Shown piece after piece: positions 3,933 to 21,586 of a stretch of DNA of 64,000 nt. Below the pieces are notes generated by a model. The model was not told the DNA's origin. It ran no database searches and saw only the letters and a list, made by a program, of their open reading frames with translations. The stretch is from positions 186,001 to 250,000 of the IMG/VR virus record IMGVR_UViG_3300028800_000001; one strand, 5' to 3'. The translations under genes and the position numbers were made by a program. Numbering within the stretch: the stretch's first letter is position 1; each line of letters begins with the position of its first letter.

Positions 3933-4043
3933 GGTAAGACTCCCATTCTTATCATCAGCCAGAGAGTGCTCTAACACTGCTCTGGCAACAAGCTTTACTA
4001 ACTAAGTATATAGTATTTGTGCAATAAGACAACACCTCGCTAT

Positions 4044-4853
4044 TTACTCGATAGTTCTAATTGTCCAAAAATCATCTGCAAGGTTTGAGTCGAGTAAGTA
4101 AGTATATGGAAGATACCCATAGCCTTTATCACCCCAATCAGTGCCCCACGAATTTCTGAAGATAAACATCTGCTTACCATTGTCATAGCCAACCGCAAGT
4201 ACTGCATGTCCACCAAGCGCCTGCTCATCTTGCGCTGGCATCGGCACCATGCCGGTCTGTGACACGTGTGGACTTTCAAAGCTCTGATAGACCGTAATTC
4301 CAGCAACGAACGGATAGCCTTCGGCAAGACATGCTTGCATTTTACTCAAGTGCTGCGTGATACGTTTGTATTTAAGTGCTAAATGTTTGAGTCCATCCTG
4401 GTAACAGGAATCGGGTGGCTTTTGCGCAAACTTCTCAATATCGTACGCCCACAGCGCTTCACTACAGACACCAATACCCGCAACCGATTTGATGCCATCT
4501 CTAATCATTGCGCCTGCATCAGAGTTCACCGTATGCTCTATAGCACGCTCGTTGTAATAAATGAAGAGGCGTGAAGGCATGGTGACCGAAAGTCCCTGCT
4601 TTGCCTGATCAAACTGGATTGCAGCGGCAATCGCATTCGCAGTACAGGAGCCCAACGACCCCTGATCATACGGAACGGGTAATTCAGCACGCAAGTCTAT
4701 CACCTGCGGAATAGTTTCAAGAACGGGAACATAGGCGTGATCACGCTGGTCAGGGGTGTCAGGAAGCCATCCATACCGGTAACCGGCTGGTTTTGCGACA
4801 ACTGTCATAGCTTTTTGCTGCTTTCGTTGATAAGCGTAACGGAAAAAGGGCAT
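4044..4853 (-). CDS. papain-like cysteine peptidase (C1A, xylellain-like)
   Basis: YGWLPD, QGSLGSCTANA (Cys), GGHAVLAVGY (His), RNSWGTDWG (Asn). Confidence 0.92.
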   Translation of the reverse strand: MPFFRYAYQRKQQKAMTVVAKPAGYRYGWLPDTPDQRDHAYVPVLETIPQVIDLRAELPVPYDQGSLGSCTANAIAAAIQFDQAKQGLSVTMPSRLFIYYNERAIEHTVNSDAGAMIRDGIKSVAGIGVCSEALWAYDIEKFAQKPPDSCYQDGLKHLALKYKRITQHLSKMQACLAEGYPFVAGITVYQSFESPHVSQTGMVPMPAQDEQALGGHAVLAVGYDNGKQMFIFRNSWGTDWGDKGYGYLPYTYLLDSNLADDFWTIRTIE

Positions 4854-4918: not shown

Positions 4919-5332
4919 TTATTTCTTTTTGCTGCCTTTTTTCTTGTTCTGATCATCCATCATCCCTGGAGTGCCAGCCTGCACAGGCGGAACGGGTGGT
5001 TTCTTTGGATTGCGCACTGGCAATGAGGGGAGCTGATTAGGATATGCCCCTGCTGGTGCCATCGGGATTTTCGAAGAGATATTATTGTCCTGCTTCCCAG
5101 GTTTCTTTGCCATAGGAGGCGGATTCTCCCCTTCAGCCGGAGTAAAAGGTCTGACCGCACCTGCAAACGGCTTCTTTGGAGTGGCTGGCTTTGCGGCTGC
5201 TGCTGGTTTGGCTGCGAAGGGATTGACTCCAGGGACACCACCCTTGCGTGCTTTCTCCATATCGCTGTTATCAATTCCCGCATTGCTCTCTTCGGGCACT
5301 GTTGCGTGACTATTTACTGGTTTCTTCGCCAT
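4919..5332 (-). CDS. low-complexity Pro/Lys/Ala-rich protein
   Basis: 137 aa, disordered composition, co-oriented in head operon. Confidence 0.6.
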   Translation of the reverse strand: MAKKPVNSHATVPEESNAGIDNSDMEKARKGGVPGVNPFAAKPAAAAKPATPKKPFAGAVRPFTPAEGENPPPMAKKPGKQDNNISSKIPMAPAGAYPNQLPSLPVRNPKKPPVPPVQAGTPGMMDDQNKKKGSKKK

Positions 5333-5846
5333 TATTTGTTTCTCTTTCTTTCTTTACAACGCGCATTACGTGATGCTGCGCAATAGGTGGCTTCACCATC
5401 GTTGGCTTTTTGGGAGCAGCGACTTTCTTCGGAGCAACGGTTCTCTTTGGAACCACCACTTTTTTCGGAGCAGCTACCCGCGCTGCGTGATGCGCTGCTA
5501 CTTTTTTCGGCTTCTTTGGCTTTTTCGGTTTTAGAACTTTTGGTTTGGGAAGCTTCTTCGGCTTTGGAGGTTTCGGTGCCTTTGCTACCGAAGAACCAAG
5601 ATGCGCATCACCAAGAAATGCCCCTGGCTTTGCTGGTGCTTGTGGCTTCACGACAGGCGCGGCAACCGGATTGGGTGTAGTAGTCACAGGATGACTCTGT
5701 ACCCCCACTATCGGCTTTGGTGGTGGCATCAATGGTTGTAAGTAATTCGTGGTACCACCAGCTTGAGAGCGCTGCGCTGGATGCATTGCATTCCAGGTAG
5801 CCCAACTCTTACGCGCTCCAGCACGCAGATACGCCTCAAATGTCAT
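5310..5846 (-). CDS. highly basic histone-H1-like low-complexity protein
   Basis: KPKK/APKK repeats, 178 aa. Confidence 0.6.
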   Translation of the reverse strand: MTFEAYLRAGARKSWATWNAMHPAQRSQAGGTTNYLQPLMPPPKPIVGVQSHPVTTTPNPVAAPVVKPQAPAKPGAFLGDAHLGSSVAKAPKPPKPKKLPKPKVLKPKKPKKPKKVAAHHAARVAAPKKVVVPKRTVAPKKVAAPKKPTMVKPPIAQHHVMRVVKKERETNNGEETSK

Positions 5847-5944
5847 GACTTCCCCTTTCGCTTTGGCCCTTTCAGATATTCCATACCACCAGCCATGCCG
5901 ATATCTTTCTTCAAGATGCTCATACGTATATGCGACTTCTTCAT
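5843..5944 (-). CDS. 33-aa basic peptide downstream of ART-like paralog
   Basis: MKKSHIRMSILKKDIGMAGGMEYLKGPKRKGKS; fills gap exactly, GAGG RBS, ATGA overlap with next gene. Confidence 0.45.
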   Translation of the reverse strand: MKKSHIRMSILKKDIGMAGGMEYLKGPKRKGKS

Positions 5945-5946
5945 AG

Positions 5947-6936
5947 TTACCTCTTTGTTGTCACGGTAGAAACGCGTATTGCTGTACGATTAAGCAGTAC
6001 AAAGTATCCAGCATCGTTATACACACCGCCCGTTCTCGTTCCACTTGCGCTCACATCATAGCCATCATAGCCCTGAGAAGCAGCATAGCGCCCTTCATCC
6101 TTATAGATTTCGAGCAACGCTTTTTTCTTATCGAGTTGCTCTCCCACTGCCAGCTTTTTTGCGGGATTACGTGTCCTGTTATAGCTCCGCTGAAGACTCT
6201 GCACTTCACTTTCTGTGGTAGTGGCAAGCGCTGTCGTTTCCCGTTTAATCTGACTATAGTCGCCAATATTGGCATCACTCTTGAGCGAAATATGCATCGC
6301 AGTATCACCATAGTCAAACGCCTCTTTAAGTCCTTTGAGCGGTAATTTCGGATCTACCGAATACGCCATATAGGTTCCGTTGCCATAAATACCATAACCT
6401 GCATAATTGGTTCCCGATTGAAACGCTTTGGTATAATCACCATTGCCAGTATCATTGACCGCTCTATAGAACTCACGCTCCCCACCACGTATTGCTGCCA
6501 TCAAATCATCTTCAGAAACCAGATCTGGCTTGCCGTCGAAGCCCTGATGCGCATAGAGACCAGCCAACACGTTATCACCAGAGACCTTGCGATACGGAAC
6601 AGTGCCATCGTTAGCAAGCATTGCTTTACCAATGTCTGATCCCAAGATCTCGTCTTCGCTGAGCTTTTTCCCTTTGACGGTCTCATGCGCAGGTGGAGCC
6701 GTCACCACGCTTGCTGGCGCGACAACTGGCTTTTTACCACGAATGCGTACTCCCACAATCTCGCCATTACTATCTCTAATTACATTGTGACCGGAGGCTC
6801 CTCCACCATGATGTACCAGTAGGCGTGCAGAGCCAGAGCCGCCAAAGCGATTACCATGCATACGCTGATCATGTCTTCCAGGCATATGCTTCACGGCCTG
6901 TTTAATGGCTTCAATATCACGCTCTAATAAATACAT
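5947..6936 (-). CDS. ART-fold-like effector paralog 1 with HxPGRHDQxxHG tag
   Basis: EFYRA, GYGIYGNGTY, GYDG, YFVLLNR; paralog of four neighbours. Confidence 0.6.
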   Translation of the reverse strand: MYLLERDIEAIKQAVKHMPGRHDQRMHGNRFGGSGSARLLVHHGGGASGHNVIRDSNGEIVGVRIRGKKPVVAPASVVTAPPAHETVKGKKLSEDEILGSDIGKAMLANDGTVPYRKVSGDNVLAGLYAHQGFDGKPDLVSEDDLMAAIRGGEREFYRAVNDTGNGDYTKAFQSGTNYAGYGIYGNGTYMAYSVDPKLPLKGLKEAFDYGDTAMHISLKSDANIGDYSQIKRETTALATTTESEVQSLQRSYNRTRNPAKKLAVGEQLDKKKALLEIYKDEGRYAASQGYDGYDVSASGTRTGGVYNDAGYFVLLNRTAIRVSTVTTKR

Positions 6937-7928
6937 TAGTACCCTCGCTTCTTAAAGAGCTTTGTAGAGACACGCACTGCGGTGCGATTGAGCAGCACAA
7001 AGTATCCAGCGCTCGGTGCCCCTGCGGTGGTACGCGTAGCACTGACATCGTAGCCATCATAGCCTTTACTGGTCGCGTATTTACCAACATCATAATAGAT
7101 GCTCATGAGTGCATTCTTTTGTGCCACTCGCGTTTTAAGATCGTTATATTTTGTATCACTTAAAGAAGGATCACTCATTTTTTGGTTGAGCGCTGTAATA
7201 TCATCTCGCGTGCTGTTTGCTAACTCTGTTGTTTCGTTGACAAGCGTATCGTAATTACCAATCTTCGCGTCCTTCTTTAAAGCAAGATGCATCGCAGAAT
7301 TACCGTAGCCATGCGCTTCCTCTAGTGCCGCAGCAGGATCGTTTTTATGTAGCGCGTAGGCCATATAAGTACCGTTCCCGTAGCCACCGTAGCCTGCGTA
7401 ATACTCTCCACTCTTAAACGCATCGGAAAACTGGGAGCCAGAGCCCTCATTGGTGCCACGATAGAACTCACGTTCCCCGCCTGCAATTGCCGCGTTCAAT
7501 TCGTCTTCAGAGACCACATCAGGCTTTCCATCAAAACCTTGATCACGATACATAGAGGCCAGGATCTCATCGCCATCATTATGCGCTGCTATTCCGCCTG
7601 TATCCACCATTTCCTGCATCGTTTTCGTATTAAGCAGTTCATCTTCCATCAGGTCACGGCCCTTGACTGTCTGATGCCCAGGTGGAACTGTCACAATGCT
7701 TGCGTCTGCTGGCTTTGGCTTTTTCCCAGGCCGAATACGTACGCCAGTGATTTCACCGTTTGCGTCCCTGATGACATTGTGTCCAGAAGCTCCACCGCCA
7801 TGATGCACTAAAGACCTACCGGCTCCTCCTCCACTGAAACGATTGCCATGTGTACGCTGATCATGACGCCCCACCATATGCTTTATCGATTGCGCAATAG
7901 CTTCAACATCGCGTTCCAATTGATACAT
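6936..7928 (-). CDS. ART-fold-like effector paralog 2
   Basis: HMVGRHDQRTHG tag; EFYRG, GYGGYGNGTY, GYDG, YFVLLNR. Confidence 0.6.
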   Translation of the reverse strand: MYQLERDVEAIAQSIKHMVGRHDQRTHGNRFSGGGAGRSLVHHGGGASGHNVIRDANGEITGVRIRPGKKPKPADASIVTVPPGHQTVKGRDLMEDELLNTKTMQEMVDTGGIAAHNDGDEILASMYRDQGFDGKPDVVSEDELNAAIAGGEREFYRGTNEGSGSQFSDAFKSGEYYAGYGGYGNGTYMAYALHKNDPAAALEEAHGYGNSAMHLALKKDAKIGNYDTLVNETTELANSTRDDITALNQKMSDPSLSDTKYNDLKTRVAQKNALMSIYYDVGKYATSKGYDGYDVSATRTTAGAPSAGYFVLLNRTAVRVSTKLFKKRGY

Positions 7929-8911
7929 TAGAGCCCCTTCTTTTTGAAGAGCTGCGTGGAAACGCGTGCCGCAGTACGATTAAGCAGTACAAAATAACCA
8001 GCATAGTTAAAGTCACCTGCCGTTGAGCGTGACGCACTCACATCAAAGCCATCGTACCCTTTAGTGACCGCATATTTCCCATAATCCTTATAAATATCAA
8101 GCAAATTTTGCTTTTCTTTGATCTTTGTATTAATGGCACCGTATTGCACCATTGACATACCTGGACCTACCTGTCCAGAAAGCCTTGCAATCTCTTTTTG
8201 CGTCTCGCGTGCCAGATCGTCGGCTTCATTCACAATTTTATTGTAATTCCCAATTTTGGCATCCTTCTTTACTGCAATATGCATGGCAGAGTCGCCATAT
8301 CCACGCGTCTCAGCAAGCGCGGCCCCTGCCAGATCAGAGTACGCCATATACGTCCCGTTTCCATAGCCGCCATACCCTGCGTAATATTCGCCGTCTTTAA
8401 AGGCATCAGAAAACTGCGTTCCAGAACCTTCCATCGTTCCGCGATAAAATTCGCGGTCTCCGTTCGCAACAGCGGCATTTAATTCATCCTCTGAGACGAC
8501 ATCTGGCTTGCCGTCAAACCCCTGATCATGATAGAGTGAAGCAAGCGTTTTATCGCCATCATTCTTAATTGTGACCCTGTCCAGGTTGACAAGCTCCTGC
8601 ATGGTATTACTCTTCAAGAGCTCATCTTCGCTCATCTCTTTGCCTTTGACGGTTTGATGCCCAACAGGAGGAGTTACTATACTTGCATCAGCAGGTTTTG
8701 GTTTCTTCCTAGCTCGTATGCGCACTCCTGTAATCTCGCCGTTGCTATCGCGGATCACATTGTGCCCAGGTGCGCCACCACCATGATGTACCAATGAACG
8801 AGCAGAGCCGCCACCACTAAAACGATTTCCGTGGGTGCGCTGATCGTGGCGACCGACCATATGTTTAAGTGCCTGTCGAATTTCCTCGACATCCTGCTCT
8901 AATTGGTACAT
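7928..8911 (-). CDS. ART-fold-like effector paralog 3
   Basis: start MYQLEQD at 8911 after AGGAG; same motifs. Confidence 0.6.
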   Translation of the reverse strand: MYQLEQDVEEIRQALKHMVGRHDQRTHGNRFSGGGSARSLVHHGGGAPGHNVIRDSNGEITGVRIRARKKPKPADASIVTPPVGHQTVKGKEMSEDELLKSNTMQELVNLDRVTIKNDGDKTLASLYHDQGFDGKPDVVSEDELNAAVANGDREFYRGTMEGSGTQFSDAFKDGEYYAGYGGYGNGTYMAYSDLAGAALAETRGYGDSAMHIAVKKDAKIGNYNKIVNEADDLARETQKEIARLSGQVGPGMSMVQYGAINTKIKEKQNLLDIYKDYGKYAVTKGYDGFDVSASRSTAGDFNYAGYFVLLNRTAARVSTQLFKKKGL

Positions 8912-8919
8912 CACGTCTC

Positions 8920-9099
8920 CTACTTCTTGATTTCTGTCGCCGCTTGCTTGAGCAGTGTTTTCCACTTCGCGTCAAGTGCATCAAAGTCTTCTGCTTTTTC
9001 CACAGCCGCCACAAACGCGTGGCGATCTTCCACGCTGAGTGCCATAAAGGTTGGGGTGCTCATCGCACGCCCTGCTTGTTGTGATAACTTTGGATTCAT
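8920..9099 (-). CDS. 59-aa helical protein, candidate immunity (missing from ORF track)
   Basis: MNPKLSQQAGRAMSTPTFMALSVEDRHAFVAAVEKAEDFDALD...; ATGA overlap with upstream gene; paralog of 11289-11483. Confidence 0.7.
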   Translation of the reverse strand: MNPKLSQQAGRAMSTPTFMALSVEDRHAFVAAVEKAEDFDALDAKWKTLLKQAATEIKK

Positions 9100-10076
9100 G
9101 CTTTCATTCCTTTCGTATACGTTTTATCTGAGACACGGATAGCCGTTCTATTAAGTAGCACGAAGTATCCGGCAGTACTACCTGCTGAAGGACTCACGTC
9201 GTAGCCATCATACCCTTTGGACGTAGCGTAGCGTCCAACATCACCATAAATCTTTTGCAGTACCGTCTGCTCGTGTATCTTCTTAGCAAGCACCTGACTC
9301 TTCGCAAGATCACGTTCGCGACGAAACTGCGCTTCGAGGCTGATTTGCTCATTTTCTGCTTCATTGTATAGCTTATTCGCCTCGACCTCCAGCTTTCCGT
9401 AATCTCCAACCTTTGCATCTTTTTTGAGTGCGATTCGCATTGCATATCCACCATACGCATGCGCCTCGCGCAGCGCTCCAGAAACACCGTCACTTCCATT
9501 GGAGTACGCCATATACGTGCCATTCCCGTACATCCCATATCCAGCGTAGTAGTCTCCATTTTTAAAGGCATCGATGTAATCACCACTTGCGTTATCACGA
9601 AGACCACGAAAGAACTCGCGTTCGCCTCCTGCCACCGCCGCTTTGAGCGCATCATCAGAAATCACATCTGGTTTGCCATCAAAGCCCTGATCTTTATAAA
9701 GAAACGCCAACGTATCGTCTCCATCATTAATGAATGAAGAGTCATCGCTATGCGCAAGCATATCAGCGACCGTTCCTGATTTGAGCAACTCATCTTCGCT
9801 CATCTCTTTTCCCTTCACCGTCTGATGCCCAACGGGAACGGGTGCGATTGTTGCATCGGCAGGCTTGGGCTTTTTGCCACGGATACGCACGCCCACAATA
9901 TCACCATTCCCATCGCGGATGACGTTGTGGCCTGCGGCCCCGCCTCCATGATGTACGAGTGACCTTGCCGCTCCCGCACCACTAAAACGATTGCCATGCA
10001 TATGCTGGTCATGACGCCCTGGCATATGTTTAATTTGCTTCAGCAGCAATCGAATATCACGTTCTAAAAGAGACAA
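9096..10076 (-). CDS. ART-fold-like effector paralog 4
   Basis: TTG start after GAGGA; HMPGRHDQHMHG tag; EFFRG, GYGMYGNGTY, GYDG, YFVLLNR. Confidence 0.6.
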   Translation of the reverse strand: MSLLERDIRLLLKQIKHMPGRHDQHMHGNRFSGAGAARSLVHHGGGAAGHNVIRDGNGDIVGVRIRGKKPKPADATIAPVPVGHQTVKGKEMSEDELLKSGTVADMLAHSDDSSFINDGDDTLAFLYKDQGFDGKPDVISDDALKAAVAGGEREFFRGLRDNASGDYIDAFKNGDYYAGYGMYGNGTYMAYSNGSDGVSGALREAHAYGGYAMRIALKKDAKVGDYGKLEVEANKLYNEAENEQISLEAQFRRERDLAKSQVLAKKIHEQTVLQKIYGDVGRYATSKGYDGYDVSPSAGSTAGYFVLLNRTAIRVSDKTYTKGMKA

Positions 10077-10084
10077 GCACTTCC

Positions 10085-10324
10085 TCACTTGATATGGGTA
10101 ATCTTCATACTCTTTTCAATACTCTCCAACGTCTCTTTCCCACTATAGGGCTCCCACTCTCCATGCAAAAGCCAGAGATAGAGGAGATCAGCAGGCGAAA
10201 GCGTCTTCGCATCCAGATCAAGAAATGCGGCCATCGCCTCATCTTTATTGCTATTGGAATCATGATATGATCCTCCATCAACAAGGTAGCCATTGTCTGC
10301 ATTTTGATACAGAATTTTCGTCAT
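10085..10324 (-). CDS. 79-aa protein, candidate immunity of DUF3626-like gene
   Basis: immediately downstream of 10336-11292. Confidence 0.55.
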   Translation of the reverse strand: MTKILYQNADNGYLVDGGSYHDSNSNKDEAMAAFLDLDAKTLSPADLLYLWLLHGEWEPYSGKETLESIEKSMKITHIK

Positions 10325-10335
10325 CTCTTTTTCCT

Positions 10336-11292
10336 TTACCCTACACGCCAGGAAACGCCAGCGGCCTTGAGTTTTTTCTGAAGGGCAATCGTCGGTTTCT
10401 TGCCAGAAAACACCACTTCAGAAATATGCTGCGTGGTGACCCCGCCATGCGTTTGCGTCTCAATATAGCGAAATTGATCGTTACTCATACCGCTCTCAAT
10501 AGAACGTACCGAGAGCGGATCAACCGCACCGTAATGAAATGGATTTGGATTGGTTGAAATATTAAATATTTTACTATTCGCTTCAGTTAAGGGTTGCGGG
10601 ATCATCTTTGGCGAAGTCCCTCCACCAGTGCTACCCATACTATCCTCTGCGGTAATCGTCACCCGATCAGAAAGCGCGGCCTTATCCATCTTGATCGCAA
10701 TAGCTCCATACCCATCTAACCTCCAGCTCCCTCCACCATTGCTATCGTTGCTCATGTACCCATAGATAGGACGCTCATTTGCATCCATCGAAGCAGGATT
10801 GCCAAAAAGATTTTCTTCAGCTTGCTTACGTGTAGACAACGAGTACTTTGCTGAAGGGTTGGCTGGCACCTGAAAGGCATTCTTAAACGAGCCATCACTG
10901 AGAATAGAGTCGAGTGCCTTCGGACTGGTACGCATCCACATCTCTGCTTTCCCTACCAGATCTTGCGCTTTTTGATCTGCTGCTTTGACATAGTCGTCAT
11001 AACTCATACCATGTTTGCTCGCAAACGCACTCCAGGTGGACTTACGAGCCGACTCATATTGCTGTTGCCAGTGATCATCTGGATGTTTATTGGCAAGCGG
11101 CTTTGGCTTTTGATTGTCAGGATGATCTGGATGCTTGGGACCAAGCTCACGTCTGCCATCAGGATGCACAATTAAATGCGCCTCACCGGCTGTCGTAAAA
11201 CGGCCCGTGTGATCATGATAGCGATTGTATTTCTCCTCAACATCACGAACCAGATGCTTAATGTCAAGAAGTTCGAAACGCAGTAACGTCAT
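10336..11292 (-). CDS. DUF3626-like protein (probable ART fold) with YHDxxGRF tag
   Basis: ERPIYGY, YGAIAI, TxEDS, YIETQTHGG motifs; N-terminal KYNRYHDHTGRFTT. Confidence 0.6.
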   Translation of the reverse strand: MTLLRFELLDIKHLVRDVEEKYNRYHDHTGRFTTAGEAHLIVHPDGRRELGPKHPDHPDNQKPKPLANKHPDDHWQQQYESARKSTWSAFASKHGMSYDDYVKAADQKAQDLVGKAEMWMRTSPKALDSILSDGSFKNAFQVPANPSAKYSLSTRKQAEENLFGNPASMDANERPIYGYMSNDSNGGGSWRLDGYGAIAIKMDKAALSDRVTITAEDSMGSTGGGTSPKMIPQPLTEANSKIFNISTNPNPFHYGAVDPLSVRSIESGMSNDQFRYIETQTHGGVTTQHISEVVFSGKKPTIALQKKLKAAGVSWRVG

Positions 11293-11483
11293 ACTTTTGA
11301 GCTACCTTTAAGATATGTTTTTTCCGCATCCACAAGAACCTTTTTATTGACACTATCCAACGCGTCAAAATCTTTCGCTTGCTCTACTGCCTCCAAAAAG
11401 CTTTGACGCTGCTCACGTGACAGGTCTCTATACACATCCGTACTCATAGCGCGTCCAGCGCGCTGTGAAAGTGCTATATTCAT
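11289..11483 (-). CDS. 64-aa helical protein, candidate immunity
   Basis: MNIALSQRAGRAMSTDVYRDLSREQRQSFLEAVEQAKDFDALD; paralog of 8920-9099. Confidence 0.7.
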   Translation of the reverse strand: MNIALSQRAGRAMSTDVYRDLSREQRQSFLEAVEQAKDFDALDSVNKKVLVDAEKTYLKGSSKV

Positions 11484-11496
11484 ACCATTCCCTTTC

Positions 11497-12519
11497 TTAG
11501 TCAATCCAGGCACCACCAGAGAAGCCAGTGTATGAGGCTTTATGATGTACTTTGGTCGAGACACGCGTCGCAGTACGATTGAGCACTACATGATACGTAG
11601 ATTGTGGCGACGCTGCTCGATCCACTTTTATCACATCGTAGCCCTGGCTTGCGGCGTAACGCCCTGCATTGGAATAGACCTCACGCAGCAACTTCAAATC
11701 ACTTTCTCGACGCTGAAGCCCTGCGTAAGAAGGATCGCTACTTGGAACGGTATAGAGCTGATTGCGCACCTTATAGATCTCACTTGTCACACGTGCTTCG
11801 GCTTGCCCTGCTTCATTATTAAGATCACTATATTTACCAATCTTTGCGCCCTTTTTAATGGAGAGACGCATCACCGCACCCTGCCCATAATTGTTAGAAT
11901 AGCTGCCTGCCACCTCTTTTGCGCCATTGGGGTTGCCCTTTTTCGCTCCTGCAACGTAGGTACCATTGCCATAAATACCGTAGCCTGGATAATACTTCCC
12001 TTGCATATACGCCTGATCAAACCCTTGCCCATCAGAAACCCCACGATACGCTTCTAGCTCTTTCCCTGTGGTCACATATTTGTCCATCTCGGAAGGACTG
12101 ACCACATCAGGCTTCCCATCAAAACCGTGATGCGCAAATAATGCTCCGAGCAGCGCGTCTCCTCCAGCACTGCGTGTAGCAAACTGCTTTGGATTGGCCG
12201 CATACGCATCACCAAATTTCGCAAGAATATCATCATCACTCATGGGACTGCCTTGCGTAATTTTATTGGCTATCGCAGGACTTACCTTTGGAGGTTTGGG
12301 GGGTTTTACAGGCTTTGGAGGAGGCACATCAGGACCATGCGAAAGAGGATTGCCATGCGCGTCATATTGAAGCACTCCAGGCTTGCCGCCAATACGTATC
12401 TGGCGACGCGTCCCAGCGATCATGTGAAATCTATTACCATGCGTACGTTGATCATGACGACCAGGAAGATGCTTAATTTGTTCGCACAGTGCCTTGAGCT
12501 CTTGCTCTAGAAGAAACAT
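11497..12519 (-). CDS. ART-fold-like effector paralog 5 (most divergent)
   Basis: HLPGRHDQRTHG tag; EAYRG, GYGIYGNGTY, GYD, YHVVLNR. Confidence 0.6.
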   Translation of the reverse strand: MFLLEQELKALCEQIKHLPGRHDQRTHGNRFHMIAGTRRQIRIGGKPGVLQYDAHGNPLSHGPDVPPPKPVKPPKPPKVSPAIANKITQGSPMSDDDILAKFGDAYAANPKQFATRSAGGDALLGALFAHHGFDGKPDVVSPSEMDKYVTTGKELEAYRGVSDGQGFDQAYMQGKYYPGYGIYGNGTYVAGAKKGNPNGAKEVAGSYSNNYGQGAVMRLSIKKGAKIGKYSDLNNEAGQAEARVTSEIYKVRNQLYTVPSSDPSYAGLQRRESDLKLLREVYSNAGRYAASQGYDVIKVDRAASPQSTYHVVLNRTATRVSTKVHHKASYTGFSGGAWID

Positions 12520-12612
12520 AGCGCACTCCATATCTCAAAAGATAAAATAGATATTTGAGATATGGACATTTGAGGATGCACCTATCATAGCAGATCTGTG
12601 CAGAAAAAGAAA

Positions 12613-12735
12613 CTATTTTTTCTTGGGAAGTTTACTTTTCACATTCTTTACAACCGCGCCCCAGGAGCGCTTCGCTACCGGCTCGTCCCATATAATAGAA
12701 TCAGGATGCCACAAAAACTTTTTCGATTTCTTCAT
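12613..12735 (-). CDS. 40-aa peptide downstream of VIP2-like ART (missing from ORF track)
   Basis: MKKSKKFLWHPDSIIWDEPVAKRSWGAVVKNVKSKLPKKK; GGGAGG RBS; own promoter. Confidence 0.6.
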   Translation of the reverse strand: MKKSKKFLWHPDSIIWDEPVAKRSWGAVVKNVKSKLPKKK

Positions 12736-12752
12736 ACTCGCCTCCCACATAT

Positions 12753-12805
12753 AGTATACCCTAATTCACACGTTACGTCAAATATTTCTTCTTTGCATTT
12801 TCAGA
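12753..12805 (-). promoter_or_regulatory. sigma70-type promoter with upstream box
   Basis: TTGACG-17-TATACT plus TCTGAAAA at conserved distance. Confidence 0.7.
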
Positions 12806-13489
12806 CTTGGCAAGTCCCAACGTCACTGTTCGAATGCCATATTGATTTTTACCTGTACCAAGCACTTTGAACTTTGACCCAGGCGGAATAAGAAATTCGT
12901 GTTCATCCTTTCCTTCGGAAATACTTTCCACATACAATCCTTTTGCGCCTTTGGGCACATGGATTACAAACTTCATTGTATCGCCAAAGGAGGATTCATC
13001 GTCGCTCGTGGTTGAAACAAAGGCTGGATCGGTAAAGCTTTTACCAACGTTGCGTTCGAGCTCTTGAAAGACCGACTTGGCCGTTGCTTCATCAGGAAGT
13101 TTAATGCCCCGTGACACCGAGAATGCGACAGGGGCTTCCCCTCTATTTAATCCCTCTGTCGCCGCTTTGATCATCTGAGCATATTTGGCAGGCAGCGCCG
13201 TCTTCTCACGCAGTGAGCGGTTAAACATATCGTAGAGACTACTGGTGTACTGCACGATAGCATTTTTTTGTTCGCGAGAAAGTCCCTTTGTCATCTTCTT
13301 ATAGAGACCGAGCAGATGCGTGTTGCGCTCTTCATCGCTTCCAGCAAGGCCACCGCTATCGCTTTCCTCTGCGCTTCCGTAATGTCCCGCAGATGCGGTT
13401 GCAAAACGACCATGATCATCATGATAGGGATCAGCCTTACTTGCTAAAAAGCGCGTAAGTTGTACCACGTCGCTCACGAAAGGAATCAT
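12773..13489 (-). CDS. ADP-ribosyltransferase, VIP2/C3-like (R-S-E class)
   Basis: YT...FNRSLR, VSRG, FVSTT, EHEFLIPPGSKF; N-terminal KADPYHDDHGRFAT tag. Confidence 0.85.
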   Translation of the reverse strand: MIPFVSDVVQLTRFLASKADPYHDDHGRFATASAGHYGSAEESDSGGLAGSDEERNTHLLGLYKKMTKGLSREQKNAIVQYTSSLYDMFNRSLREKTALPAKYAQMIKAATEGLNRGEAPVAFSVSRGIKLPDEATAKSVFQELERNVGKSFTDPAFVSTTSDDESSFGDTMKFVIHVPKGAKGLYVESISEGKDEHEFLIPPGSKFKVLGTGKNQYGIRTVTLGLAKSENAKKKYLT

Positions 13490-16368
13490 TTACGCACGCT
13501 CTCCTGAAATTCGCGATACTGTGTGCTCACCGAGACTGGTGGCCTGCGCTTTTTCTCTTCGCGTACTGCAAGCTCTTTCTCTGTGCGTTCCAAGAGCGCT
13601 TCCACGCGGTGAATAGCTTCCTTCTTCTCAGGGACAAAGACCTGAGAACAGCGGCAACGAATGATATTGCCAGCAGACGCCCCAATGGTCATATCCCCTG
13701 GATACATCAAATATTCGCCTCCCACCAGAAAGGGATCTTCATAGCGACGCAATTGTTGATCGGCCTGCGCATGTGCCAGTCTGGTATGTGCGTCATGCGT
13801 ACTAATCCAGACTTTTAAAAGTGGAATACCAACGGCTCCAGCCGTCTTATGTGCGCCATAGTTATAGGCAGTCGTCCACTCCGTTTGCGCAATCATTTCT
13901 GCTTTTTTGCCTAAGCGCTCACCAGAGAGGAAATTGCTCAAGCGTTCGCCAATAGCGCGGTTGTCTTCGCCTTGCGCAAGCCCTGTCTCAATTTCACGAG
14001 CAACCTCTTTTTTGAGGGTATCAAGCACCTGCGCGGTCGCCTGCTCACCATGCTTACGCCCATATTCAGCCGCAAGGCTTTGCCATGACGGCGGTGACCA
14101 TTTCTTTTTATAAGCAGCACTGGTAAGATTTTTATGCGTATCATTTACGCCCTGTGTTCCTGCTTGCTCTGAGCACAGCGAAAGACCATGCAGAATGACT
14201 TTCTTTGAGGTGTCCCAGACCGGCTCAAGATTATCAGTAATCGTATTCGGATCAGTGCCTACACGTGCAGTTGCAATCGCCTGCTGTGCGGTGACGTTTA
14301 ATGCGTGACGCACTGGCTCCACACCACGCGTACTCTCCAGGTTTTGCTGACTCTCTAGCACTGGTGTGCTCTTAATCTCTGTCACAATCACCCGACTCAT
14401 CGTCTCTTGCGCATCCGCGTCCTGCACATTTGACGTTCCTTGCTGTGTTGAGCCCTGTCCAGGTTTGGGTGTAGGAGAGGCCGAAGGATTTGGCCCAGGA
14501 CTAGGAGGTGCTGGCTGTTTTCCAGGCGGTAGTTGTGCAGGTTGTTGCCCAGGTGGTAACTGCCCACTACCATCGTCAGGCGGTGGTGGTCCTCCTGCTC
14601 CTGGTTGCGGTGGCCCTGCAAGCGTCTGCTTAAACATCGTCTCGACAAACTGGCCCATTGCCTCTTCAGGCACAAACGCTTTATTCATCGTCGTGATATT
14701 GAAGTAATCCCCACCATCAATTTCAGTGAGCCCAAGAAGATTGCGCACTTCGTTTAAGGTCACAACGCCTGCGCCCCACTGTGCCATGACGCGAGTATTG
14801 AGGCTATCACGGTCCTCTTGTAACGCCTCCACCTGATCTTTGTCATAGTCGAGCTCTAAGCGCTCATCAAACATTGGCACGAGCCAGACGTTGAGACGAT
14901 CCCTCAGTTTATCCATGAGGGGCAAAACCGTCTCCTGATAAAAGCTTTTACGTGCTTCCCCATAATTGGAGTTGTGGACACAGAGCCCTTGCGCAAAGAA
15001 GGTATGCGTCCCTTCTACTTCAATGTCATACACATCCACTTCAAGGAGCTCTTCAATCTTTTGCAGCTCCACCAGTGTCGTGCCAACCGGAATACTGGGA
15101 AATTCATCAGAATAGACGCATTCATGCCTGATTGTTTCTTTGAGCGGCCCATCACGAGCCACCAACAGATCGCCAACACGCAAGTCATCTAAGCGCACAA
15201 AATAGAGTCCATCAAAACGCTCTTTCTTCTGTTTATTTCTGCGCGCCATAAGAAAGGGGTGATTGGCCGTCGCCTCAACCGTAAACGATCCTGCCGTCAA
15301 ACGAAACGTCTTCTTCTTCCCTGTTTTCCACTGGCGTGTAATACGCCGCTTCACAATCGTATTGAAGGTCGGATCATAGGAGTAAACTTGAATACCAGGA
15401 GTGAGCATGCCGATAGGCAGTGGCCCATGCACCGTTTCAATGCGGCTCTCATAAGGGAGACAATAGGTTTTATTGGCATTGTCACCAAGCAGTTCAGACG
15501 GCACACCAAGAGCAATGGAGATATCACGCATATTTTGCTTGCGGCTCTCCTGCCAGTCCAATTCCATTGGCGACATAGAAAACTGTTTCCAGTCCAACCC
15601 ACCCTCTAGCAAGAGTGGTACACCTGCGTTCTTCTTGCCGGTATATTTCTCCCGAATCACTCTTCTCAAACGCTCAAATTGATCGTTGCCGAGTGTGCCA
15701 GAGGCAACAAGCGCACCAGAAGGTCTTCCTGCGTTCTGAAGTATAGCGGTGTTCCAGTCAAATCCTTCATTTTGCTGATCAATCAAGGCTGCGGCTACCG
15801 CGACGGGAGAAAGTCCGTACCAATCATTCGTTGCCGAGAACATCTTGAGATGCATAATATCTGGTGCATCATAGTATTGGCGATGACCATCAAGCGTATA
15901 TTCGTAGCCAGCGATAGTACCAATACCAGGAATGACACGCATACGGTCTGGTCGCATTGTCCAGAGCTCCATTGGCAGCGCACGCGGGTTAGGACGTACC
16001 GCGTACATATAGGCATTGCCCGAAAGTATCCAGTAGGAAATGATCTCTTCTAAAAAGGTGGCGGAACCATGACGGGGATTGGGTTGCATAAAAAGATCAA
16101 GGAGTGGGTGTTCTTCAATGACGCGTTTCTTATTGGTTTTCTGTGTCAGTTTCCAGGGGATGCCAGCACAACTTTGCGCGATCAAAGAGATAGCTTTATA
16201 CGTCGTAATATTTTTTTCATAGCCGAATGTTGCTAAATTCTTAAAATCGCGTGGCGTATAAATAGGTTGCCCAGGCGCAATGAATTGTGCGTACATCTGA
16301 TACGCTGGATCGTCCTTCTTTTCAGAACCACCCAGGCGCAAGAAGAACTTCTGGAGCGGATTTGCCAT
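13486..16368 (-). CDS. HK97-family portal protein with intein, fused to MuF (Mu gpF/SPP1 gp7) head morphogenesis domain
   Basis: GNAY, GLSPV, NAGxPLLLEGG, GVPSELLG, TLNEVR portal motifs; C-terminal KVWISTHDAHTRLAH...YPGD...CRC MuF motif. Confidence 0.9.
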   Translation of the reverse strand: MANPLQKFFLRLGGSEKKDDPAYQMYAQFIAPGQPIYTPRDFKNLATFGYEKNITTYKAISLIAQSCAGIPWKLTQKTNKKRVIEEHPLLDLFMQPNPRHGSATFLEEIISYWILSGNAYMYAVRPNPRALPMELWTMRPDRMRVIPGIGTIAGYEYTLDGHRQYYDAPDIMHLKMFSATNDWYGLSPVAVAAALIDQQNEGFDWNTAILQNAGRPSGALVASGTLGNDQFERLRRVIREKYTGKKNAGVPLLLEGGLDWKQFSMSPMELDWQESRKQNMRDISIALGVPSELLGDNANKTYCLPYESRIETVHGPLPIGMLTPGIQVYSYDPTFNTIVKRRITRQWKTGKKKTFRLTAGSFTVEATANHPFLMARRNKQKKERFDGLYFVRLDDLRVGDLLVARDGPLKETIRHECVYSDEFPSIPVGTTLVELQKIEELLEVDVYDIEVEGTHTFFAQGLCVHNSNYGEARKSFYQETVLPLMDKLRDRLNVWLVPMFDERLELDYDKDQVEALQEDRDSLNTRVMAQWGAGVVTLNEVRNLLGLTEIDGGDYFNITTMNKAFVPEEAMGQFVETMFKQTLAGPPQPGAGGPPPPDDGSGQLPPGQQPAQLPPGKQPAPPSPGPNPSASPTPKPGQGSTQQGTSNVQDADAQETMSRVIVTEIKSTPVLESQQNLESTRGVEPVRHALNVTAQQAIATARVGTDPNTITDNLEPVWDTSKKVILHGLSLCSEQAGTQGVNDTHKNLTSAAYKKKWSPPSWQSLAAEYGRKHGEQATAQVLDTLKKEVAREIETGLAQGEDNRAIGERLSNFLSGERLGKKAEMIAQTEWTTAYNYGAHKTAGAVGIPLLKVWISTHDAHTRLAHAQADQQLRRYEDPFLVGGEYLMYPGDMTIGASAGNIIRCRCSQVFVPEKKEAIHRVEALLERTEKELAVREEKKRRPPVSVSTQYREFQESVRK
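14971..15462 (-). mobile_element. mini-intein (164 aa, no endonuclease) in portal
   Basis: begins CLPYES, block B TANHPF, ends VYDIEV...CVHN followed by Ser. Confidence 0.9.
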
Positions 16369-16749: not shown

Positions 16750-18597
16750 TTACACATTCCCTACAATGAAATCATTCATAATTTGTGGCGTAGCGGTGTC
16801 AAAACCTACAACATCCAACGAGCCTGGATCGGCTGGATCGGCAATTGTGAATTCCGTCGCGGTCATTCCCATGACGATCAGCTTTGCATTGATACCGCTG
16901 TGCTGTCGATAATTGCGCAGCGCTTCCGAGGCGTGTATTTCACCGGCCCACGTCTCATTGTCGGTAAGCACAATAAAGGCATCCGCCTCAACATTGTTTT
17001 TCTGTGCCCAAATCATCGGCAATGAGCAATCAGTCCCACCAAACGGCATGCGATCAACAGCCGCAAGTGCATCGTCCAAACGCTGTTTTGGTGAAACAGG
17101 TAGTGGCACGAACTGATGACTAAACGCCATCATCGCATAATTGCTCTCCGTTGCAGCCGTGAGCAGCGCAAGCGCGGTGGAAGCCACTCGTGGAGTGAGC
17201 CCAATCACCTCTGCCAAGGTTCCACCGGTCATGGAACCTGAAACGTCTACCGCAAGCACCAAGCGCTTATTCGTTGGTGTGATGACCCCAAAGGAAAGAT
17301 GAAACGCGTCATGGAGCGCATCAACGATAGACTGCACAGGCGTCCAGGTAGCAGTGCTTCTCAAGCTGCGTCCGGCCTTGTAAGTGAGCATTGCGGCCAG
17401 GATTTTAATTGGGTGCAAGCGCGCTCCAACTAAGCGCTTCTGCTCATGCAAACGTTTGTTTACCAGCGCCGTTGCGCTGCTCGTTTGCGTCAGAATGCCC
17501 ACTCTGGTCATCGTCGCAAGGTTCTTCACCATCATTTCCGGCTGCGACTGCTCCAAGAGAATCTCCCAGACCGCTTTCGATTTGAGATATTGCGTTGGCA
17601 CTGCTTCACGTGGAAGTTTGTATGCCTCAATCAACTTCACGACTTCCGCTTCGCTATTGGCGCGCTTTGCCTGTTCGAAGGCACGCAAAATTGCGACCGG
17701 ATCATGATCAGAGGGAACCACTGACTCAATTTCCCCTTTCGCGATCCATTTGAGCGCTTCAGCACGCTCGCCAGAAGAATGTGGATGTGCTAAACGCACA
17801 ATATCTTGCTGACTCCAGCCATCGCGGCTCTGATACTTCACACTCTGGTACGCCAACTTCTCGACTGCCATGTCTTCGTACCACAAACGGCTGGATTTGC
17901 GCTGCGCACCACCACGGCCACGGAACTGCTCAATATAGGACTGAAAGTGCAGCCAATGTGTACCAATGCGCACCACTTTTCCAAGCTGGCTATACGCATA
18001 TTGGCGAACCTCAAGATCCTCTGGATGCAAAAGCTGAACGGTTTTCCCACTCTTCTTCACCTTGAGCTCAATCGTGTTTTCGTCCAGACGCGTCCAGGTA
18101 CGACTGCCATCTTTGGACGTAACGGTAAGCCCAACTTTCGGAAAACGTGTAAACTCTCTCTCGTGCTTCTCGTTTACGTGTTCGGTGTCATCCTCTGTGT
18201 AGCGATGCAACAGGTACACCATCTCAGCGGGAACCGTGTGCGCAACCGTTCCATGTACATCACAGGCGCAACAACGCGCAAGCGCAAACAGCGCAGGATC
18301 TTCTTTCGGAGCGCGCCCTGCCTGGGAAATCTCCACAATGGTGTCTACCACCTCTTTGCCACGACCAGCGCGTAGTAACGCCTCTAGTGTGTCCAGGTTG
18401 TCCTTCGTCAGCTTTTTCTTTCCAACATAATAGGTAGAGCTGCTACTGCCCAGGATCAAAAAACGCTTGAAGCGATCCAGATCGTCCAGCGTGTAACTAA
18501 ATCCACCCGCATTGTTTTTCTTCTGGTTGGAACCAGGGATCGGCTGGCTCTGTGGCGTCACCAAATTACGCGTGCCCACATTACGATAATTGCTCAT
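16750..18597 (-). CDS. rsr: Ro60 / TROVE-domain RNA-binding protein (Rsr)
   Basis: NNAGGF, RFLILG, KYQSRDGWS, NLATMTR, vWA MIDAS DVSGSM, GGTD, LTDNET, DVVGFD; GAGGAG RBS before ATG 18597. Confidence 0.95.
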   Translation of the reverse strand: MSNYRNVGTRNLVTPQSQPIPGSNQKKNNAGGFSYTLDDLDRFKRFLILGSSSSTYYVGKKKLTKDNLDTLEALLRAGRGKEVVDTIVEISQAGRAPKEDPALFALARCCACDVHGTVAHTVPAEMVYLLHRYTEDDTEHVNEKHEREFTRFPKVGLTVTSKDGSRTWTRLDENTIELKVKKSGKTVQLLHPEDLEVRQYAYSQLGKVVRIGTHWLHFQSYIEQFRGRGGAQRKSSRLWYEDMAVEKLAYQSVKYQSRDGWSQQDIVRLAHPHSSGERAEALKWIAKGEIESVVPSDHDPVAILRAFEQAKRANSEAEVVKLIEAYKLPREAVPTQYLKSKAVWEILLEQSQPEMMVKNLATMTRVGILTQTSSATALVNKRLHEQKRLVGARLHPIKILAAMLTYKAGRSLRSTATWTPVQSIVDALHDAFHLSFGVITPTNKRLVLAVDVSGSMTGGTLAEVIGLTPRVASTALALLTAATESNYAMMAFSHQFVPLPVSPKQRLDDALAAVDRMPFGGTDCSLPMIWAQKNNVEADAFIVLTDNETWAGEIHASEALRNYRQHSGINAKLIVMGMTATEFTIADPADPGSLDVVGFDTATPQIMNDFIVGNV

Positions 18598-21584: not shown

Positions 21585-21586
21585 CA

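Follow-up and report, generated by a model that had tools for sequence, protein, structure and literature searches.

Seven genes for probable host-modifying enzymes adjoin the portal gene in an uncultured phage of 327 kb, and all seven encode the same kind of short peptide near the N-terminus. What does this peptide do? The reading favored here, with a probability of roughly 0.6, is that it is a tag for capsid cargo loading, for processing or for both, on effectors that would be injected, and that the locus is a head-module arsenal. All positions refer to the window, the 64-kb stretch of DNA that was analyzed.

The array begins with a gene that fuses portal and MuF domains (Pfam Phage_portal, 6.5e-71; Phage_Mu_F, 1.7e-07). 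The product also matches PHROG portal and head-morphogenesis families, and the same fusion is found in the related locus L002. Seven tagged genes follow on the minus strand (Table 1): one VIP2/Alt-type ADP-ribosyltransferase (ART), one DUF3626/SopF-type ART-like protein and five paralogs whose fold is ART-like. Each is built as a short leader ending in lysine, a tag of ~16-20 residues, a disordered linker and a domain. The Pfam and PHROG matches and the translations confirm the original prediction of a portal-MuF gene followed by seven genes with this leader and tag. Beyond these seven, neither form of the tag turns up in a credible context in any open reading frame (ORF) of the 64 kb. Among the larger ORFs of the window and of the 10 kb past its low end, portal-MuF is the only head-assembly gene found, and neither the prohead protease nor the capsid gene of this phage was seen, which counts against the favored reading. 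As a separate observation, absent from the original prediction, the portal domain is interrupted by a mini-intein whose junctions, read from the translation, have Cys at the start and His-Asn followed by Ser at the end.

Table 1. Coordinates of the array and of the genes that close it
Feature	Position	Strand	Basis
Portal-MuF fusion, Pro/Gly-rich linker between domains; operon start	13486..16368	-	Pfam, PHROG
Mini-intein within portal, residues 303-466	14971..15462	-	Pfam Intein_splicing 7.6e-11, weak Hint_2 match
VIP2/Alt-type ADP-ribosyltransferase, class-2 tag	12773..13489	-	PF03496 3.3e-21, PF01129 2.5e-10
Class-2 tag of VIP2-type ART, KADPYHDDHGRFAT	13397..13438	-	Translation; fits class-2 consensus
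Paralog 1, most divergent; likely start 12519; tag DNA match 12437-12474	11497..12531	-	Alignments
Small ORF, 64 aa, after paralog 1, no tag	11289..11483	-	Translation; gene call in related contigs
DUF3626/SopF-type ART-like protein, class-2 tag	10336..11292	-	DUF3626, phrog_8314 3.4e-11, SopF
Class-2 tag of SopF-like protein, KYNRYHDHTGRFTT	11191-11232	-	Within 10336..11292
Small ORF, 79 aa, after SopF-like gene, no tag	10085..10324	-	Conserved in L002, L003
Paralog 2; likely start 10076; tag DNA match 9994-10031	9096..10088	-	Alignments, gene calls
Small ORF, 59 aa, after paralog 2, no tag	8923..9102	-	Gene call in L003
Paralog 3, 327 aa from ATG at 8911; tag DNA match 8829-8866	7928..8911	-	Alignments
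Paralog 4, the modeled one; tag DNA match 7846-7883	6936..7928	-	AlphaFold2
Paralog 5; tag DNA match 6854-6891	5947..6936	-	Alignments
Two Pro/Lys-rich low-complexity proteins, no tag	5310-5846, 4919-5332	-	Translations
Papain-family (C1) cysteine peptidase, no tag, closes array in window lineage	4044..4853	-	PF00112 1e-13

The VIP2-type ART of the window retains an intact R-S-ExE set, all of which is invariant across the family alignment, and its tag reads K-ADPYHDDHGRFAT. The SopF-like protein, whose tag reads K-YNRYHDHTGRFTT, matches Pfam DUF3626 weakly (E 0.0056, below cut-off), and its family profile matches Salmonella SopF (7DN8, E 6.1e-05; 7DN8/7DN9 at ~6e-05), which is an ART (PMC10333799). 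Two of the seven genes belong to the families of Salmonella SopF (DUF3626) and of the Bacillus VIP2 and clostridial C3-type ARTs; the window genes differ in being phage-borne and in carrying a head-module tag, and their products presumably act on bacterial targets.

The five paralogs share the invariant motifs YRG, GxxGNGTY, GYD and LNR, with identities of 34-37% to paralog 1 and up to 69% among the other four, so the alignments bear out the predicted family. Three starts were corrected to the most likely ones using gene calls (7928-8965 to 8911, 9096-10088 to 10076 and 11497-12531 to 12519). The AlphaFold2 model of paralog 4 has a pLDDT of 76.6 overall and >90 in the domain, whose fold is ART-like. 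The five paralogs have no conserved strand-5 acid, and without this catalytic residue naming them transferases is unsafe. The original prediction of ART-like enzymes is supported as regards superfamily membership by sequence or fold. Against the PDB, the top match of the paralog fold is a cyanophage A4 pre-ejectosome chain (E 2.8e-04); the pre-ejectosome sits inside the capsid (PMC12002296). ART folds come next. Viral proteins with a matching fold include ART-PolyVal and protease-MuF fusions, and in cyanophage PSS2 the MuF protein gp030 has the paralog domain as its C-terminal part. MuF fusion proteins such as gp030 carry this domain without the motif, a point against the favored reading.

Small untagged ORFs lie between the effector genes. 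The 64-aa ORF is a paralog of the 59-aa one, and its product is a candidate immunity or chaperone protein. Past the last tagged gene, the two Pro/Lys-rich proteins have no match in Pfam or PHROG; ORFs of similar size occupy the same position in L002 and L008, and the L002 pair is also Pro/Lys-rich. The C1 peptidase, found in the same position in both loci, may have a role in processing.

The tag occurs in two classes. Class 1, with the consensus [VIL]xKHLxGxHDQxxHGx[WR], appears in five window genes as K-H-[ML]-x-G-R-H-D-Q-x-x-H-G-N-R-F behind a 15-aa leader, and its degenerate DNA pattern has five matches in the window against 0.00 expected (100 shuffles). Class 2, built from IMG/VR instances, reads [VIL]xK[FY]NPYHDxxGRFTT. 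Both have the core [VIL]-x-K-aromatic/His-x-P-...-H-D-...-G-x-[FW]. Orthologs of the window VIP2-type ART in L008 (43-46% identity) have a class-1 tag at the same place, and single polyproteins contain both classes in L015, L069 and L077. Both tags are present as originally described, and on this sequence evidence they are interchangeable variants of one motif family. In the AlphaFold2 model of paralog 4, residues 2-15 form a low-confidence helix; from the tag through the linker, as far as about residue 80, the chain is disordered except for a short hairpin of low confidence, and the confident domain follows. Such predicted disorder is what a linear motif would be expected to show. No publication naming the motif was found in the literature.

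A profile of the window tag retrieves 254 protein clusters, most of them made up of large proteins in which the motif recurs internally as many as 10 times, and DNA pattern scans match at least 120 IMG/VR stretches for class 1 and 85 for class 2. Bacterial genomes (596 Gb) yield only 16 single matches, and the motif is therefore nearly absent from prophages as well. Among cultured phages the motif was not found: a short-motif tblastn against INPHARED was empty, perhaps through low-complexity masking, and the closest cultured relatives by capsid protein are without it. The tags precede modules of ~200 aa, either as single genes or inside giant polyvalent proteins, from families that include ARTs, topoisomerase IB, GNAT, zeta toxin, NUDIX and zincins. 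Examples are nine successive units of tag and VIP2 ART, two units of leader, tag and ART, and proteins bearing NUDIX, DUF3626, topoisomerase IB, ART-PolyVal or GNAT. Of 69 tag proteins in a census of domains, 20 match an ART-type family (VIP2/exotoxin 10, ART-PolyVal 3, ART 3, PARP 2 and DRAT 2, multiple matches per protein being possible), topoisomerase IB and GNAT occur in four each, and InPase, MPTase-PolyVal, PBECR4 and MuF in one each. At the class-1 loci, 174 of 272 tagged ORFs have a single tag, the first motif peaks at residues 20-30, and both the spacing between motifs and the distance from the last motif to the C-terminus are 200-250 aa. What is new here is that the tags are neither confined to the window nor only N-terminal.

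The gene order in these loci is portal, MuF, array, prohead protease/scaffold and capsid. Portal_Mu is present in 46 class-1 loci, always upstream of the array, and MuF is upstream in 42, the median distance being 0 bases. Downstream of the array or within it lies an S78_2 protease cluster (33 members), followed by the scaffold-like protein c3, c8 and a capsid protein. Of the 62 class-1 IMG/VR loci whose upstream DNA is long enough, 45 have MuF or portal as the closest gene on that side; at least five more class-1 loci have a portal or head-protease-like gene by PHROGs (four scanned, and L108 through its likeness to L097). Head genes accompany class 2 in 65 of 78 loci, in the same order. Several head-gene lineages, with Portal_Mu or PF04860 portals, contain the motif. 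The tag is thus strongly tied to head modules, and on this point the original prediction is not refuted. The original prediction, a shared N-terminal signal that loads unrelated enzymes into the head for injection, is upheld for the unrelated enzymes and the link to head modules; the signal is N-terminal in the seven window genes and, more widely, a module-junction motif.

A peptide that precedes enzyme modules among head-assembly genes in hundreds of uncultured phages is probably an undescribed loading or processing signal. We infer that the effectors of the locus are probably carried in the virion. The tag would recruit each module into the procapsid by docking on a conserved head component (MuF, portal, scaffold, capsid interior or protease) and would probably also be trimmed or cut there, the best candidate site being the invariant [VIL]-x-K common to both classes. 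Together with the DNA, the enzymes would subsequently pass into the next host.

A pure docking signal leaves the copy at every polyprotein junction unexplained, and this is where the strongest alternative begins: the motif would be only a protease site that separates modules, with packaging dependent on something else. Its candidate proteases are the prohead S78 protease, a polyvalent zincin module or the C1 peptidase that ends the array in the window lineage. An S78_2 gene directly follows arrays, zincin-like modules are common in them, and in L097 and L108 the motif comes after an S78 domain on one polypeptide (L015 belongs to the same cluster, with an ORF cut at its 5' end); moreover, polyvalent proteins have been proposed to be cut by their own peptidases (Iyer et al., 2017; PMC5512222). 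A pure separator, in turn, leaves the tag on single-domain genes unexplained. Most single-tag ORFs, including all seven in the window, have nothing to separate; single-tag ORFs predominate, and the first tag of an ORF peaks near its start. The ~20-residue footprint, in which H, D, Q, H and G are invariant, far exceeds usual protease sites, and the same motif recurs across lineages whose candidate proteases differ. Processing alone is accordingly a possible but rather unlikely account.

Considerably less probable is a metal-binding or regulatory element, neither loading nor cleavage signal, that holds the enzyme in an inactive or unfolded state within the producing cell or aids passage through the tail channel. 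Class 1 does have three invariant His and one Asp (H-x4-H-D-x3-H), the tag is disordered when modeled alone, and several cargo families are toxins, such as zeta toxin and ARTs. However, class 2 has other residues at two of these His positions and is nevertheless interchangeable with class 1, and the model predicts no intramolecular contact between tag and domain. Slightly more doubtful still is the proposal that the tagged enzymes are late intracellular proteins, unpackaged and placed in the head module only for expression timing, the motif having another purpose. The virion location is itself deduced, and the window lineage keeps small untagged ORFs between effector genes. Against this stand the strict position between MuF and protease/scaffold, the match of the paralog fold to a pre-ejectosome chain and the domain repertoire, which matches the phage polyvalent proteins, a group regarded as virion proteins (PMC5512222, PMC9503650). 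In addition, another tagged-module family, seen in L084 and not in the window, has a homolog in Rhodococcus phage E3 whose annotation is structural protein. Finally, a DNA-level recombination signal that shuffles cassettes would fit the varying number and order of modules in close relatives, but it is very improbable and largely refuted by codon usage, since synonymous codons are mixed at all invariant residues (near 50:50 at five of eight) and third codon positions vary among the five copies in the window, which indicates selection on the peptide.

The favored reading, a loading and/or processing tag, has precedents in phages T4 and P1 and a parallel in encapsulin cargo-loading peptides. Encapsulin peptides are short, conserved and joined by a flexible linker, usually C-terminal and single, and bring unrelated enzymes into an HK97-fold shell; they show no homology to the tag, and encapsulins have no injection step. 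In phage T4, the targeting peptide of the internal proteins is removed by the prohead protease after use, and IPI and Alt carry it too. It is ~10 aa, strictly N-terminal and lineage-specific, whereas the tag is ~20 aa, has two classes, is also internal and occurs in several head-gene lineages; the two have no sequence similarity. As described in PMC9958956, this N-terminal capsid-targeting sequence (IPII/IPIII) sends unrelated proteins into the prohead core, and T4 Alt is a head-packaged ART injected with the DNA (PMC5512222). The Dar antirestriction proteins of phage P1 are likewise several effectors packed into the head, there in an ordered way, and the prohead protease cuts the N-terminus of DarA (PMC12810830); they have no motif in common with the tag, and P1 packaging relies on Hdf and DarA rather than a common tag.

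Also close to the locus are the polyvalent proteins, which are large, virion-linked, encoded amid late/head genes and proposed to be co-injected with DNA, and which string together ART, GNAT, zincin peptidase, InPase, PBECR, NUDIX and similar domains (Iyer, Burroughs, Anand, de Souza and Aravind, 2017; PMC5512222). That paper credits their processing to MPTase or assemblin-like peptidases and does not mention a junction motif ('HDQ' occurs 0 times). The tag-bearing giants carry the same signature domains; here, in contrast, modules are mostly separate genes and VIP2/Alt-type ARTs dominate. MuF-toxin fusions of temperate phages (Jamet et al., 2017; PMC5576092) and MuF-ART fusions (PMC9503650) occupy the same head-module place and likewise link a MuF head protein with variable toxin or ART domains. 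They differ in that the link here is gene neighborhood and a peptide tag instead of covalent fusion, the motif being nearly absent from bacterial genomes and missing from PSS2 gp030. The locus would extend the known polyvalent and MuF-linked virion effectors by a peptide tag, putatively for loading or processing, placed on separate genes or on fused modules.

The five paralogs begin with M-[YFS]-x-L-E-[RQ]-[DE]-..., followed by K-H-[ML]-x-G-R-H-D-Q-x-x-H-G-N-R-F, and the corresponding tags of the VIP2-like ADP-ribosyltransferase (ART) and of the SopF-like protein read K-ADPYHDDHGRFAT and K-YNRYHDHTGRFTT, respectively. The degenerate DNA pattern of the first tag has five matches in the window versus 0.00 in shuffles, and neither tag occurs in a credible context in the other ORFs of the window. 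For a paralog, AlphaFold2 predicts a low-confidence helix at residues 2-15, disorder through the tag and linker to about residue 80 with the exception of one short hairpin of low confidence, and from there on a confidently modelled domain. The translations and this model confirm the leader, the Lys, the two tag types and the linker as the original prediction had described them. The genes of the array are all on the minus strand and are transcribed from high to low coordinates, and all ORFs studied are uninterrupted.

Coordinates of the tagged array and of neighboring features in the window
Feature	Coordinates	Strand	Basis or remark
Portal(+mini-intein)-MuF protein, 960 aa	13486-16368	-	Phage_portal 6.5e-71; MuF domain 1.7e-07; Pro/Gly-rich linker between
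Mini-intein in portal, residues 303-466	14971-15462	-	Intein_splicing 7.6e-11; Cys...His-Asn/Ser ends; no endonuclease domain
VIP2/Alt-type ADP-ribosyltransferase	12773-13489	-	PF03496, 3.3e-21
DUF3626/SopF-like gene	10336-11292	-	Pfam DUF3626 E 0.0056 (weak); family profile versus SopF
Five paralogs	11497-12531, 9096-10088, 7928-8965, 6936-7928, 5947-6936	-	YRG, GxxGNGTY, GYD and LNR common to all
Three small ORFs without tag, 64, 79 and 59 aa	11289-11483, 10085-10324, 8923-9102	-	Each after one enzyme gene
Two Pro/Lys-rich low-complexity proteins	4919-5846	-	Between array and peptidase
Papain-family C1 peptidase	4044-4853	-	Last gene of the array in the window phage
Ro60/TROVE + vWA protein	16750-18648	-	vWA_Ro60 1.4e-64; directly upstream of portal
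tRNA cluster, 11 genes	20435-29344	-	ARAGORN; Rfam confirms 9 and adds one at 28369-28442
Two HNH endonuclease genes	1605-2438, 3090-3977	-	Just downstream of peptidase
Two GmrSD_N (DUF262)-type proteins with HTH domains, C5 cytosine methyltransferase between	56903-63285	+	Opposite strand

The motif exists in two classes. Class 1, represented by 356 instances among the matches listed, has the form [VLI]-x-K-H-L-x-G-x-H-D-Q-[SK]-[TS]-H-G-x-W-A-x-G, with little or no variation at the H, D, Q, H and G. Class 2, first noticed as a second repeated junction motif in the same polyproteins, has the form [VIL]-x-K-[FY]-N-P-Y-H-D-x-x-G-R-F-T-T-A and fits the tags of the window ART and the SopF-like protein. 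Common to both are [VIL]-x-K, an aromatic residue or His, Pro, H-D and G-x-[FW]. Both classes occur within one protein at three loci (L015, L069 and L077), and orthologous ARTs (43-46% identity) have the tag at the same position, of class 2 in the window and of class 1 in the related locus L008. Among the class-1 loci listed, the first motif peaks at ORF residues 20-30 (leader lengths are upper bounds, because the ORF start in metagenomic loci is taken as the first start codon), neighboring motifs, and likewise the last motif and the C-terminus, are mostly 200-250 aa apart, and 174 of 272 tagged ORFs have a single tag. Synonymous codons are mixed at every invariant residue, with proportions near 50:50 at five of eight, and third codon positions differ among the five tag copies in the window. 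Conservation is therefore of the peptide and not of the DNA, and a DNA-level repeat as the nature of the motif is largely refuted by this codon usage.

To survey the spread of the motif, a 40-column profile of the leader and tag of the window genes was searched against 1.84 billion proteins. At E up to 0.001 it retrieved 254 protein clusters, mostly of large proteins, and single large proteins contain up to 10 motif copies. Examples include a 2201-aa protein of nine consecutive units of tag and VIP2 ART, a 455-aa protein with two such units, a 3023-aa protein in which ten tags accompany NUDIX and DUF3626 modules, and further proteins bearing topoisomerase IB, ART-PolyVal and GNAT. VIP2-type ARTs are the most frequent of the tagged modules: in a Pfam census covering 69 proteins with the tag, there are 10 of them, four each of topoisomerase IB and GNAT, three ART-PolyVal, two each of PARP, DRAT and lethal-factor-like zincin, and one each of InPase, MPTase-PolyVal, PBECR4 and MuF. 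The few C2H2 zinc-finger proteins in the census were rejected as false positives.

At the DNA level, an exact scan of IMG/VR with the class-1 degenerate pattern identifies at least 120 stretches, single loci having as many as 13 copies, and a narrow form of class 2 identifies 85 more with up to 10 copies per locus, the window's own contig among these; both counts are lower bounds. The same class-1 scan of 596 Gb of bacterial and archaeal genomes yields 16 single matches, which indicates that the motif belongs to rarely integrated phages. A near-identical DNA search of GenBank phages returned no match to the locus, a word-based protein search with the tag alone returned the window's own proteins only, and the domain search returned close relatives only. 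Searching short tag peptides against INPHARED with tblastn gave nothing even at E of 10, probably owing to masking or word limits, and this outcome does not speak for the motif being absent there.

The neighbors of class-1 arrays were clustered and representatives annotated, giving the gene order Portal_Mu, MuF, tagged array, S78_2 protease, scaffold-like protein, 131-aa protein and major capsid protein. Among the class-1 loci listed, Portal_Mu is present at 46 and MuF at 42, each always upstream of the array and MuF at a median distance of 0 bases, while the 33 members of the S78_2 (XkdF-type) prohead protease cluster lie downstream of the array or inside it. The protease is followed by the scaffold-like protein (263 aa), the 131-aa protein and then the capsid gene. 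MuF or portal is the nearest upstream gene in 45 of the 62 class-1 loci listed that have at least 1.5 kb of upstream DNA, and at least five of the remaining 17 have another portal or head-protease-like protein (four by scanning, and L108 by its likeness to L097). For class 2, recognizable head genes in the same order are found in 65 of 78 loci. Co-location of the tag with head genes, which the original prediction had proposed as a check on its idea of a shared loading signal, thus held for both classes. A gene-position index also places three giant proteins, one beside a prohead protease and capsid gene, one between portal and capsid, and one in a phage closely related to that of the window.

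Arrays reach 13 or more modules and occupy 12-15 kb of contigs of about 60 kb. The number of modules and their fusion differ among close relatives: the VIP2 ART is missing from L002, where two paralogs and the SopF-like gene accompany the portal-MuF gene, and L008 contains a single ART and a double ART. At another locus (L007, 1135-4215), two class-1 motifs at residues 635 and 802 lie in a C-terminal extension of the Portal_Mu protein, so modules can be fused to the portal as well. Two sequence features of the adjoining head proteins were also observed. At 3286-4047 and 972-1946 of locus L029, for example, the S78_2 protease ends in a tail (...VHVDTIM...KKKK) similar to the sequence with which the capsid protein begins (MPQPNxNSVHVDAILTN), and the two may share a docking or cleavage element. 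The scaffold-like protein has a conserved His-rich N-terminal motif (ETSGVDHPAHLHEGW), for example at 2367-3143 of L029.

Several further features accompany the array in the window phage, for which the 327,295-bp source contig in IMG/VR and the 11 tRNA genes together point to a jumbo phage. The portal mini-intein is also found in L002. The 64-aa and 59-aa small ORFs are paralogs of each other (MNxxLSQxAGRAMST...), with two more in L002, and the three untagged small ORFs that follow effector genes are candidates for immunity or chaperone proteins. No family was matched by the two Pro/Lys-rich proteins, and relatives have similar-sized ORFs at the same place. The C1 peptidase ends the effector array in the window phage and in both related phages (L002, 7721-8512; L008, 4282-5091), a site similar to that of the S78_2 prohead protease in other lineages. 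Neither a prohead protease nor a capsid gene of the window phage was found among the larger ORFs of the window and of the 10 kb beyond its low end. In related contigs, the region past that end includes genes for a GH18 chitinase and a glycosyltransferase (L003). Near the Ro60 gene, Rfam gathering scores were reached by no non-tRNA family, Y RNA included, and nowhere in the window by a Y RNA-like family.

The identity of the VIP2-like enzyme as an ART, as originally predicted, is borne out by its match to PF03496 (76 bits; cut-off 23.4) and by an intact catalytic set, which comprises the strand-1 Arg in SRG, the strand-2 Ser-Thr in STT and the strand-5 Glu-x-Glu in EHE. The R, S, E and E are invariant across a 14-member alignment of the family, and by profile and catalytic residues the protein is assigned to the VIP2/Alt-type ARTs of the R-S-E clade. 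The SopF-like gene matches Pfam DUF3626 weakly (16.2 bits, under the cut-off of 27), and a homologous module of another tag-bearing protein scores 26.8 bits on the same profile. The family profile built around the window gene matches the solved Salmonella effector SopF (7DN8, also 7DN9) at E 6.1e-05. SopF itself is an ART whose triad is of the I-Y-E type (PMC10333799); PIYGY and Y-x-E-x-Q, which are invariant in the SopF-like family, are its possible counterparts. Profile-profile comparison detected no link from this family to the VIP2 family or to the paralog family.

No Pfam family matches the five paralogs with E of 0.1 or lower, two of them weakly match the 'minor head protein' PHROG family, and their domain corresponds to the C-terminal part of gp030 of cyanophage PSS2, a 1499-aa MuF protein. 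Foldseek with a full-length window paralog found nothing significant, the query being dominated by a helical-hairpin insert, and the fold search was instead performed with a modelled homolog lacking the insert (pLDDT 82.4). Its best PDB match is chain 9k3a_B of the cyanophage A4 pre-ejectosome (E 2.8e-04), a protein complex inside the capsid (PMC12002296), followed mostly by ART folds, namely RES toxin, exotoxin A domain III, PARP12, ParT and PltA (E 0.03-0.3). Among the predicted viral structures of BFVD, matches include ART-PolyVal-like proteins (2.8e-04) and a protease-MuF fusion protein. An hhalign comparison with the VIP2 family gives a probability of 56% and E 1e-04, with YRG aligned to the strand-1 Arg and GNGTY to the STT strand. 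Each score is modest, and together they suggest an ART-like fold. Identity with ART-PolyVal (PF18760, H-Y-D) was rejected, since there is no Pfam match and strand 1 has Arg instead of His; the likeness is in fold only. Across 20 homologs, the conserved strand-5 acid (E/D/Q) is absent, with F, H, Y, I or T at the site before [VI][VL]L, and conservation is also lacking in the residues ahead of this site. The proposal that the five paralogs are ART-like therefore stands for the fold but not for the catalytic acid, and we refer to them as ART-fold proteins with possibly lost or altered activity; from their sequences, they may have no activity or may rely on other residues for it.

The recurring unit is thus a tag, linker and enzyme, free or fused, located in the head module and with the peptide under selection. 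Because the tag is kept on single-domain genes, it is not merely a separator of fused domains, and its presence at every polyprotein junction implies that each module needs its own copy. A model of the T4 type is the simplest that covers both the single-gene tags and the junction copies. Under this model, the short peptide would take each module into the procapsid and a protease would then clip it off. The invariant [VIL]-x-K common to both classes is a candidate cut site, the H-D...G-x-[FW] part is a candidate docking element, and the candidate receptors are MuF (always adjacent), portal, scaffold, protease and the capsid interior. We infer, with a probability of roughly 0.6, that the tag is a procapsid loading and/or processing signal of injected effectors. 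An unlikely alternative is that the motif serves as a processing site only.

Phages inject proteins along with their DNA, and the T4 targeting peptide is clipped off by a protease. To our knowledge, the choice of proteins for packaging is unclear outside T4 and P1, and injected proteins are not recognizable from sequence in uncultured phages. Polyvalent proteins, MuF-toxin and MuF-ART fusions, T4 Alt with its targeting sequence and the P1 Dar proteins have already been described (PMC5512222, PMC9503650, PMC5576092). In T4, a short peptide takes proteins into the prohead (PMC9958956), and P1 DarA, whose N-terminus the prohead protease cuts, provides a second precedent for clipping (PMC12810830). 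The tag resembles the T4 capsid-targeting sequence in architecture only, in its N-terminal position and its occurrence on unrelated cargo. Polyvalent proteins (Iyer et al., 2017) have several unrelated domains with effector roles per polypeptide, whereas each of the seven window proteins has one; the same-tag relatives of the latter are true multi-domain giants. Tag proteins have the same signature repertoire as polyvalent proteins (ART, ART-PolyVal, GNAT, InPase, MPTase-PolyVal, PBECR4, NUDIX and topoisomerase IB), and the head/late-gene position of polyvalent proteins is matched by the head-gene synteny of the tag arrays.

The string 'HDQ' is absent from the 2017 paper on polyvalent proteins (PMC5512222), full-text searches with the motif strings found nothing relevant, and we could not find a prior description of the two-class junction and N-terminal motif in the literature searched. 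The searches turned up no cultured phage that carries the motif; it is absent from Arthrobacter phages Wheelbite and Ottawa, Rhodococcus phage E3, Bxz1-like phage Rizal and cyanophage PSS2. The two Arthrobacter phages are the nearest cultured relatives by capsid protein (56-60% identity) and are without both motif and array, which may be why the motif has so far escaped notice.

More broadly, and tentatively, the two-class motif could be a general cargo-loading peptide of tailed-phage capsids, a counterpart of encapsulin targeting peptides that would bind a conserved head component, alone decide packing and injection, and be cut after [VIL]-x-K. If so, a motif search would yield a catalogue of the effectors that uncultured phages inject, which can occupy 12-15 kb of a 60-kb genome, and the motif would be a portable handle on protein loading into phage heads. 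The tagged-module set now includes VIP2-type ARTs and probable SopF-type ARTs, plus a new ART-like fold family without the catalytic acid, and some phages devote a fifth of a 60-kb genome to such modules. A conserved peptide before enzyme modules between MuF and the prohead protease or scaffold offers a sequence-level marker for injected cargo and a concrete, testable candidate for a loading or processing signal, and it joins separate tagged genes and giant polyvalent proteins into a single system with two forms.
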